From assembly GCA_002269645.1 (NCBI GenBank), contig NIVC01000911.1, forward strand, positions 248,001-312,000: a DNA stretch of 64,000 bases. Direction: 5' to 3'. This document shows, in pieces, positions 7,016 to 7,312 of the stretch. This stretch comes from Macrostomum lignano (lineage: Eukaryota). The notes beneath the pieces are model-generated. The model was not told the DNA's origin, ran no database searches, and was given only the letters and a program-made list of their open reading frames with translations. Positions within the stretch are counted from its first letter, which is position 1. Every line of letters begins with the position of its first letter. Both the position numbers and the translations under genes were made by a program.

Positions 7016-7312
7016 TCATAGACGTATTATCCTTTGAAATTCGCATCGATAAGAAGACTCGTTGCAGCGCAGAGCCGGACAGCAGACCTTCCGCGAGCTC
7101 CAGGGAATCTTCGGGCCCATCTCCACTACAGCGGTCTTCTGGCACTCCATGCCGAACTTCGCGCACTGAGAGTACCAGCGGTCCATGGTTTTATACTTGC
7201 GTAGCAACAGTAAGTTTGTTCTGGTGCAGGCGCTGGCGGGAGTTAAAGTCAGCTTGCAGAGAGAGCAGAGCCAGACTACTGAGACGCACAAGATGGCTCG
7301 AAGAAGTTGCAT
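7016..7312 (-). CDS. Secreted cysteine-rich peptide, inhibitor-cystine-knot-like (98 aa, single exon)
   Basis: True ATG (CAT at 7310-7312). Hydrophobic N-terminus ends in A-S-A at residue 28, followed by a basic linker ending in Arg45, then C50-x6-C57-x19-C77C78-x4-C83-x6-C90. Minus-strand ATTAAA at 6917-6922 and AATAAA at 6792-6797 lie downstream. Confidence 0.7.
   Translation of the reverse strand: MQLLRAILCVSVVWLCSLCKLTLTPASACTRTNLLLLRKYKTMDRWYSQCAKFGMECQKTAVVEMGPKIPWSSRKVCCPALRCNESSYRCEFQRIIRL

Follow-up and report, generated by a model that had tools for sequence, protein, structure and literature searches.

A short gene on the minus strand at 7016-7312 was examined in a 64,000-nucleotide stretch of the genome of the flatworm Macrostomum lignano (positions 248,001 to 312,000 of contig NIVC01000911.1; the whole stretch is hereafter called the window). 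We put it at about an even chance that this is a single-exon, lineage-restricted, three-copy M. lignano gene encoding a 98-residue precursor of a small secreted, disulfide-rich peptide, most likely one resembling an inhibitor cystine knot (ICK). A small secreted, cysteine-rich peptide is the likely product. The features of the gene, by position in the window, are as follows.

7016-7312, minus strand: single-exon coding sequence of 98 codons plus stop; a GenBank-called gene of the BOX15_Mlig008180 family, "hypothetical protein"
7229-7312, minus strand: predicted signal peptide, residues 1-28 (MQLLR / AILCVSVVWLCSLC / KLTLTPASA), by hand analysis of hydrophobicity and the −3/−1 rule
7178-7228, minus strand: basic linker or possible pro-segment, residues 29-45 (CTRTNLLLLRKYKTMDR), read from the sequence, its processing putative
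7043-7165, minus strand: six-cysteine core C50-C90 with an ICK-like frame and an N85-E-S sequon, from cysteine positions, toxin alignments and shuffles
7085-7141, minus strand: loop 2, 19 residues, an insertion relative to spider ICK toxins and the segment of lowest predicted local distance difference test (pLDDT) score
6792-6797, minus strand: AATAAA, candidate poly(A) signal about 220 nt past the stop codon, read from the sequence

A single-exon gene called three times in the genome

The open reading frame (ORF) begins with an ATG at 7312 on the minus strand and ends with a stop codon at 7016-7018, giving a product of 98 residues: MQLLRAILCVSVVWLCSLCKLTLTPASACTRTNLLLLRKYKTMDRWYSQCAKFGMECQKTAVVEMGPKIPWSSRKVCCPALRCNESSYRCEFQRIIRL. 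An identical 98-residue gene is already called on the host contig, NIVC01000911.1, in assembly GCA_002269645.1. The GenBank proteins PAA54975.1 and PAA83339.1 (BOX15_Mlig008180g1 and g2, both "hypothetical protein") represent the other two copies. They are 99% identical to the window protein and stand one residue apart from it (L8V). These copies are sited on NIVC01002827.1 and NIVC01000422.1, and share their neighbours, each standing between a Rab11-FIP3-like gene and a protein kinase. The three near-identical, syntenic copies look like genome-duplication copies.

To an initial reading of the DNA made from its letters only (the sequence-only reading), the gene had looked unannotated. GenBank in fact lists it three times, under the name hypothetical protein, with gene models based on RNA sequencing (RNA-seq). 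The models of GCA_002269645.1 come from a genome-guided RNA-seq transcriptome (StringTie/TACO); trans-splice and poly(A) sites with experimental support served to cut the transcripts, and TransDecoder assigned the ORFs (PMC5730564). The gene model thus has a transcript behind it. The name Mlig008180 appears in no paper found by our literature search, and it is absent from the M. lignano supplement text searched, some of it possibly partial.

The first ATG carries a purine at −3, and initiation at Met43 (aaaaccATGg), which would yield a leaderless product of 56 residues, is therefore less likely. A short upstream ORF (MQPKISQA-stop, 7405-7431, minus strand) opens with the ATCATGCAAC context that is shared with the main ATG at 7312; whether it falls within the 5' untranslated region (UTR) depends on the transcription start site. 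At the other end, the AATAAA at 6792-6797 is kept in all three copies, which diverge just past it. An unspliced intron within loop 2 was considered and rejected on reading the sequence: the sole GT..AG candidate is 32 nt long, GC-rich and frame-breaking, and the RNA-based model is unspliced. Only short ORFs were found on the opposite strand, and Rfam and tRNA scans gave nothing at the gene locus.

Layout of the precursor

Cysteines are located at residues 9, 16, 19, 29, 50, 57, 77, 78, 83 and 90. From residue 50 onward they make up the framework C50-x6-C57-x19-C77C78-x4-C83-x6-C90, with Arg89 immediately preceding the last cysteine. The translation thus matches the layout put forward by the sequence-only reading, namely a hydrophobic leader, a basic stretch, a C-C-CC-C-C frame and an arginine before the last cysteine. 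The three leader cysteines (Cys9, Cys16 and Cys19) and Cys29 that it had noted are present, and its second loop of 19 residues was confirmed (C57-x19-C77).

As judged from its composition, the leader appears to have textbook signal-peptide features. Its n-region is positively charged at R5, and an uncharged hydrophobic core of 14 residues follows at residues 6-19 (best 13-residue Kyte-Doolittle mean, 2.58). The leader ends in P-A-S-A before Cys29, which fits the −3/−1 rule and suggests cleavage between ASA and Cys29. The product remaining after the predicted cleavage would have 70 residues, a mass of about 8.3 kDa, an isoelectric point of about 9.6 and seven cysteines. The linker at residues 29-45 contains Cys29 (the seventh, unpaired cysteine), a dibasic R38-K39 and R45, and has no classical furin site. 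The basic stretch between Cys29 and the core reads TRTNLLLLRKYKTMDR.

Likeness of the cysteine core to an inhibitor cystine knot

ICK peptides usually follow a pattern of roughly C-x3-7-C-x3-8-CC-x1-5-C-x4-13-C. Loops 1, 3, 4 and 5 of the core, with 6, 0, 4 and 6 residues, fall within these ranges, whereas loop 2, with 19 residues, falls outside. Since loop 2 lies outside the knot ring, such a length would be topologically tolerable, and from its sequence the six-cysteine core appears compatible with an ICK frame bearing a loop-2 insertion.

Profile searches returned spider toxin families below their thresholds. With the unedited sequence, the only family to surface in Pfam was Toxin_12, matched in the C-terminal half at E 0.5-1.1 (10.5-11.5 bits; cut-off 21). 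A test construct was then used to probe the possibility of an ICK with an insertion, in which loop 2 was artificially shortened to 7 residues to give a 41-mer. Over its full length, the Toxin_7 profile was matched by this 41-mer at E 0.0046 (17.6 bits; cut-off 27), as was that of Toxin_12 at E 0.02 (15.9 bits; cut-off 21). Its PDB matches included a tarantula toxin, 2mxm (E 0.021), and GsMTx-4 (E 0.23), all six cysteines being aligned; with 2mxm it also has in common the K-F-G of loop 1 and, past the doublet, CC..L.C. Ten shuffles that preserved the cysteines gave no toxin-family match; the toxin-family signal therefore does not come from cysteine spacing alone. When the unedited mature protein was aligned to 2mxm by gapped BLASTP, the six cysteines were again aligned, with a single gap of 13 residues, located in loop 2.

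Several results weigh against the ICK-like reading. No Pfam family cut-off was reached by either the natural or the loop-shortened sequence, and the best ICK scores come from the artificially shortened one. Loop 2 exceeds the usual range, and the number of cysteines past the predicted signal cleavage is odd. AlphaFold2, run without an alignment, gave models of low confidence (pLDDT 45.7 for residues 29-98 and 55.7 for residues 44-98), in which only a beta-hairpin formed, at residues 81-84 and 89-92. Foldseek searches of the PDB started from these low-confidence models returned matches at E of at least 2.3 over 16-18 columns, which is not significant; in favour of the reading, spider ICK toxins dominated the top lists, though EGF-like modules of factor IXa and C1s appeared at similar E-values. 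To these are added the lack of homologues that keep the cysteine frame and the low power of the comparison among gene copies, both given below.

The ICK claim of the sequence-only reading thus survives in part. The framework stands, as do the sub-threshold matches to spider ICK toxins that its proposed profile check produced with Toxin_12 and Toxin_7, but these matches scored 10.5-17.6 bits against cut-offs of 21-27, no family threshold was reached, and loop 2 is out of range. Support for a knottin is weak, yet all of it points one way. We therefore describe the peptide as ICK-like but unproven, and it should not be filed as an ICK member.

The foremost alternative keeps a secreted cysteine-rich protein but gives its disulfides another fold, without a knot or different in some other way, for instance EGF-like or a novel one that uses all seven cysteines; the ICK likeness would then be convergent and would stem from cysteine spacing and a few other residues. 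All the ICK evidence lies below significance, EGF-like modules are listed by Foldseek beside the toxins, seven cysteines lie past the predicted cleavage, a 19-residue loop 2 is atypical for an ICK, and AlphaFold shows confidence in the hairpin at most; each of these suits such a protein. However, the toxin matches are lost on shuffling, with residues other than cysteine (KFG in loop 1 and CCP..L.C) contributing to them, the six cysteines stand in register with those of a tarantula toxin across one gap, and no other cysteine-rich family scored better. We judge this alternative unlikely, while ranking it first among those considered.

Evidence on the coding status of the open reading frame

The base composition of the locus follows the reading frame. 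A GC island of 52-60% matches the ORF exactly, between flanks of 28-41% GC. Within the ORF, GC at the third codon position (GC3) is 0.657, compared with 0.43 at the first and 0.49 at the second, and a similar GC3 bias is seen in the Pfam-supported genes of the window, namely histone H2B, the pyridoxal decarboxylase exon and the nuclear-receptor exon.

The three copies were also compared. Only 2 of the 297 ORF columns are variable, with no indel; one of them causes the leader change L8V, the other being synonymous. In the flanks, 54 of 1018 columns are variable, 24 of them indel columns. The difference is significant by Fisher's test (p=1e-4; p=0.019 with substitutions only), at a low power, as the copies are about 97% identical including the flanks and the variable sites of the flanks lie in clusters. 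The AATAAA about 220 nt past the stop codon also favours a gene.

Length is a poor guide to coding on its own: 30 ATG-initiated ORFs of at least 98 residues occur in the repeat-rich window. A permissive C-C-CC-C-C pattern was found in this ORF only, among the 86 window ORFs of at least 60 residues. Among 200 sequences of 64 kb simulated with a second-order Markov model, one combined a hydrophobic leader with the cysteine framework; the cysteine pattern of this test was defined post hoc, and a genome of 760 Mb could still hold dozens of chance cases.

These figures bear on a second alternative, that the ORF arose by chance on a short non-coding or repeat-associated transcript between the inverted satellite arrays that flank it, and that TransDecoder took it as the longest ORF although no peptide is made. 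Most of the 30 long ORFs in the window are spurious, no homologues were found in the databases searched, the annotation pipeline takes transcript ORFs without requiring homology (PMC5730564), the post-hoc estimate of 1/200 leaves room for dozens of such cases in the genome, and the gene is mentioned in no literature found, all of which would be expected of a chance ORF. Such an origin would not, however, account readily for a GC island with exactly the boundaries of the ORF, for GC3 periodicity in the correct frame, for an ORF that stays intact and free of indels in all three copies beside flanks with 24 indel columns, for a six-cysteine frame found together with a signal-like leader and an A-S-A site, or for the purine at −3 of the first ATG. 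We find the chance explanation doubtful and hold it quite probable that this is a real protein-coding gene.

Search for relatives

A word-indexed search of 5.8 billion proteins recovered only the gene's own two-member cluster. An exhaustive phmmer search with residues 29-98 against 1.84 billion cluster representatives found no homologue that keeps the cysteine frame, its only matches being the protein itself and one labelled P0003. The latter (E 2e-4) is a 253-residue tandem-repeat protein and was rejected as spurious, its score being summed over three "PWPSRR" repeats with none of the cysteines kept.

The full precursor matched no Pfam family at E up to 10, and PDB sequence searches with the precursor and the core gave chance matches only (PurE and the Toxoplasma surface antigen P30). 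The check for paralogues by tblastn that the sequence-only reading had proposed was run with the ORF, and none was found in the window. The protein was absent from the public RNA-seq data assembled in Logan, a result that is uninformative since the control, the H2B of the window, was likewise found only in NCBI genome contigs. The sequence-only reading had counted a lack of homologues with the same cysteine frame against itself; none came to light in the protein databases searched, which probably do not include other Macrostomum species. The gene is an orphan in the searchable databases. It appears lineage-restricted and is already deposited in GenBank as a hypothetical protein.

The one family name attached to the protein comes from UniRef, where UniRef100_A0A267GDF5 is called an "EMI domain-containing protein". 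EMI domains are N-terminal cysteine-rich protein-interaction modules of extracellular matrix proteins, with a cysteine pattern loosely like a C-x6-C pair plus CC-P. A stand-alone EMI domain would suit a position directly after the predicted signal peptide and seven cysteines with a C-x6-C pair and a later CC-P, but it is very improbable: neither the precursor nor the mature protein nor the core brings up Pfam EMI (PF07546) at E up to 10, the EMI-bearing chains of periostin and TGFBIp were not matched in the PDB sequence search, BLASTP alignments to their EMI domains put the cysteines out of register, the CCPAL motif lacks both the glycine and the aromatic residues of the C-terminal EMI motif, and the protein ends after 98 residues with a stop codon in all three copies, leaving a module of less than about 75 residues and no further domains. 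The name presumably stems from an automatic PROSITE-profile rule, and the label is probably misleading.

Satellite arrays around the gene

A unique segment of about 1.6-1.8 kb, flanked by inverted arrays of a 21-bp satellite, holds the gene together with its UTRs. The arrays in the window and at the other two copies (L001 and L002) are the following.

4731-5860: 21-bp satellite array downstream of the gene, inverted partner of 7699-8078
7699-8078: 21-bp satellite array upstream of the gene, inverted partner of 4731-5860
9116-9620 and 11470-12472 at copy L001: inverted arrays
9094-9618 and 11418-11937 at copy L002: inverted arrays

The arms of the arrays measure at most 318 nt and show 87-92% complementarity. 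On its inner side, each array terminates in a common unique stretch of about 110 bp (about 5885-5990 and 7585-7700 in the window). The inverted arrangement is present at all three copies, with differing repeat numbers, and it resembles a foldback element.

Other genes and repeats in the window

About 2 kb upstream of the peptide gene and on the same strand lies a second gene for a secreted protein (about 9230-9995, minus strand; 228 residues, one intron). Besides a signal peptide, its product carries an F5/8 type C (discoidin) domain and matches PAN/apple weakly (E 3.6e-4). GenBank calls this gene at the L001 copy only (7202-7969, plus strand); the window copy and L002 have no such call.

On the minus strand, 32240-32605 encodes a replication-dependent histone H2B (Pfam Histone, E 1e-23), and after it comes a histone 3' UTR stem-loop known to Rfam (32114-32160, minus strand; 36.2 bits). 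Three other M. lignano contigs have calls for the exact H2B protein and NIVC01000911.1 apparently has none, so that the window copy may be unannotated. Exons of a pyridoxal-dependent decarboxylase of the aromatic amino acid/histidine type are found at 54015-54299 and 59220-59570 (plus strand). The intron after the first of these is filled by 117 copies of a 27-bp repeat, which form a 3.2-kb array (54274-57441) that begins within the last 26 bases of the ORF bearing that exon. A long ORF at 39147-40178 (minus strand), which adjoins a 10/20-bp tandem array at 38470-39140, has a nuclear-receptor C4 zinc finger at its C-terminal end (PF00105, E 4e-11) and presumably supplies a nuclear hormone receptor gene with its first coding exon.

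The density of tandem arrays is exceptionally high over the whole window, with more than 25 arrays of periods from 4 to 160 bp, several of them longer than 1 kb. They produce most of the long spurious ORFs (MSACGAK... and ALILAPQ... repeats), and ORF-based readings of the M. lignano genome need a caveat for tandem arrays.

Proposed route from precursor to peptide

On the ICK-like reading, the N-terminal 28 residues would direct the precursor to the endoplasmic reticulum and would be cleaved off after A-S-A (Ala28). The remaining basic protein of 70 residues would fold oxidatively, and its 41-residue core, C50-C90, would most likely take an ICK-like form with disulfides I-IV, II-V and III-VI and a C-terminal beta-hairpin. 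The 19 residues of loop 2 (QKTAVVEMGPKIPWSSRKV) would be exposed at the surface, outside the knot ring. Cys29 might be removed together with the basic linker, by a possible cut at R38-K39 or R45, or might form an intermolecular disulfide and serve dimerisation. The basic mini-protein would then be secreted and bind an extracellular target, as a gland secretion, a defence peptide or a signalling peptide; reproduction and adhesion or mucus are further candidate roles. A function in venom, defence or neuromodulation is pure speculation.

A wider proposal can be built on this, to which we give little credence. The gene may have founded a family of endogenous knottins confined to Macrostomum, its basic loop 2 being a new target-binding surface set into a frame that otherwise resembles tarantula toxins. 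The peptide would serve as a neuropeptide-like signal or in a glandular secretion with a part in defence, reproduction or adhesion, and the gene was perhaps born or captured within the foldback-like inverted satellite arrays. To our knowledge, knottins have hardly been described in the flatworm phylum. If the peptide is made and knotted, a free-living flatworm would join the organisms with endogenous ICK peptides, and a natural knottin scaffold would be at hand that tolerates a 19-residue insertion in loop 2. Such a scaffold would be of some interest for peptide engineering and for the independent origins of scaffolds. The function is readily testable, as M. lignano offers transgenesis, RNA interference and in situ methods. 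As matters stand, the gene is one among thousands of uncharacterised, lineage-specific "hypothetical proteins" in the M. lignano genome, and its value is modest.

Comparison with known systems

The closest likeness is to spider ICK toxins (Toxin_12, PF07740, and Toxin_7, PF05980; 2mxm_A, which we take to be ProTx-III/Tp1a, and GsMTx-4, 1lu8/1tyk). The C-x6-C ... CC-x4-C-x6-C spacing is common to both, as is CC-x2-L-x-C after the doublet, and tarantula toxins have the K-F-G of loop 1 as well (CAKFGMEC here, CLKFGWKC in the toxin). Both have a basic precursor with a leader, and secretion and a C-terminal hairpin, features of the toxins, are predicted for the M. lignano peptide. In contrast, loop 2 of the toxins has 5-6 residues against 19 here, Cys29 is an extra cysteine, and M. 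lignano feeds on diatoms and is not venomous; there is no sign of common descent.

EMI domains (PS51041/PF07546; periostin 5yjg and TGFBIp 5nv6) are like the peptide in their position after a signal peptide, here a predicted one, a C-x6-C-type pair and a CC-P doublet. They differ from it in that the cysteines of the peptide are out of register with theirs and no other extracellular-matrix domain is attached to it.

The sequence-only reading had likened the cysteine spacing of the peptide to that of honeybee OCLP1, an endogenous, non-venom peptide of ICK type from an invertebrate (PMC5705965). That link gained no support from the searches; the exhaustive phmmer run against the 1.84 billion representatives, made in place of a direct alignment, gave no arthropod protein at E up to 0.001.

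The mussel MgCRP-I peptides offer a parallel in build. These are reported to be taxon-restricted pre-pro peptides with six cysteines in the mature part, knottin-like by cysteine pattern only (PMC4558851), and a pre-pro build, putative in M. lignano, six cysteines, a likeness to knottins and restriction to one lineage are common to MgCRP-I and the M. lignano peptide. MgCRP-I is, however, a large, hypervariable multigene family (PMC4558851), whereas M. lignano has one gene in three near-identical copies with no paralogues detected.
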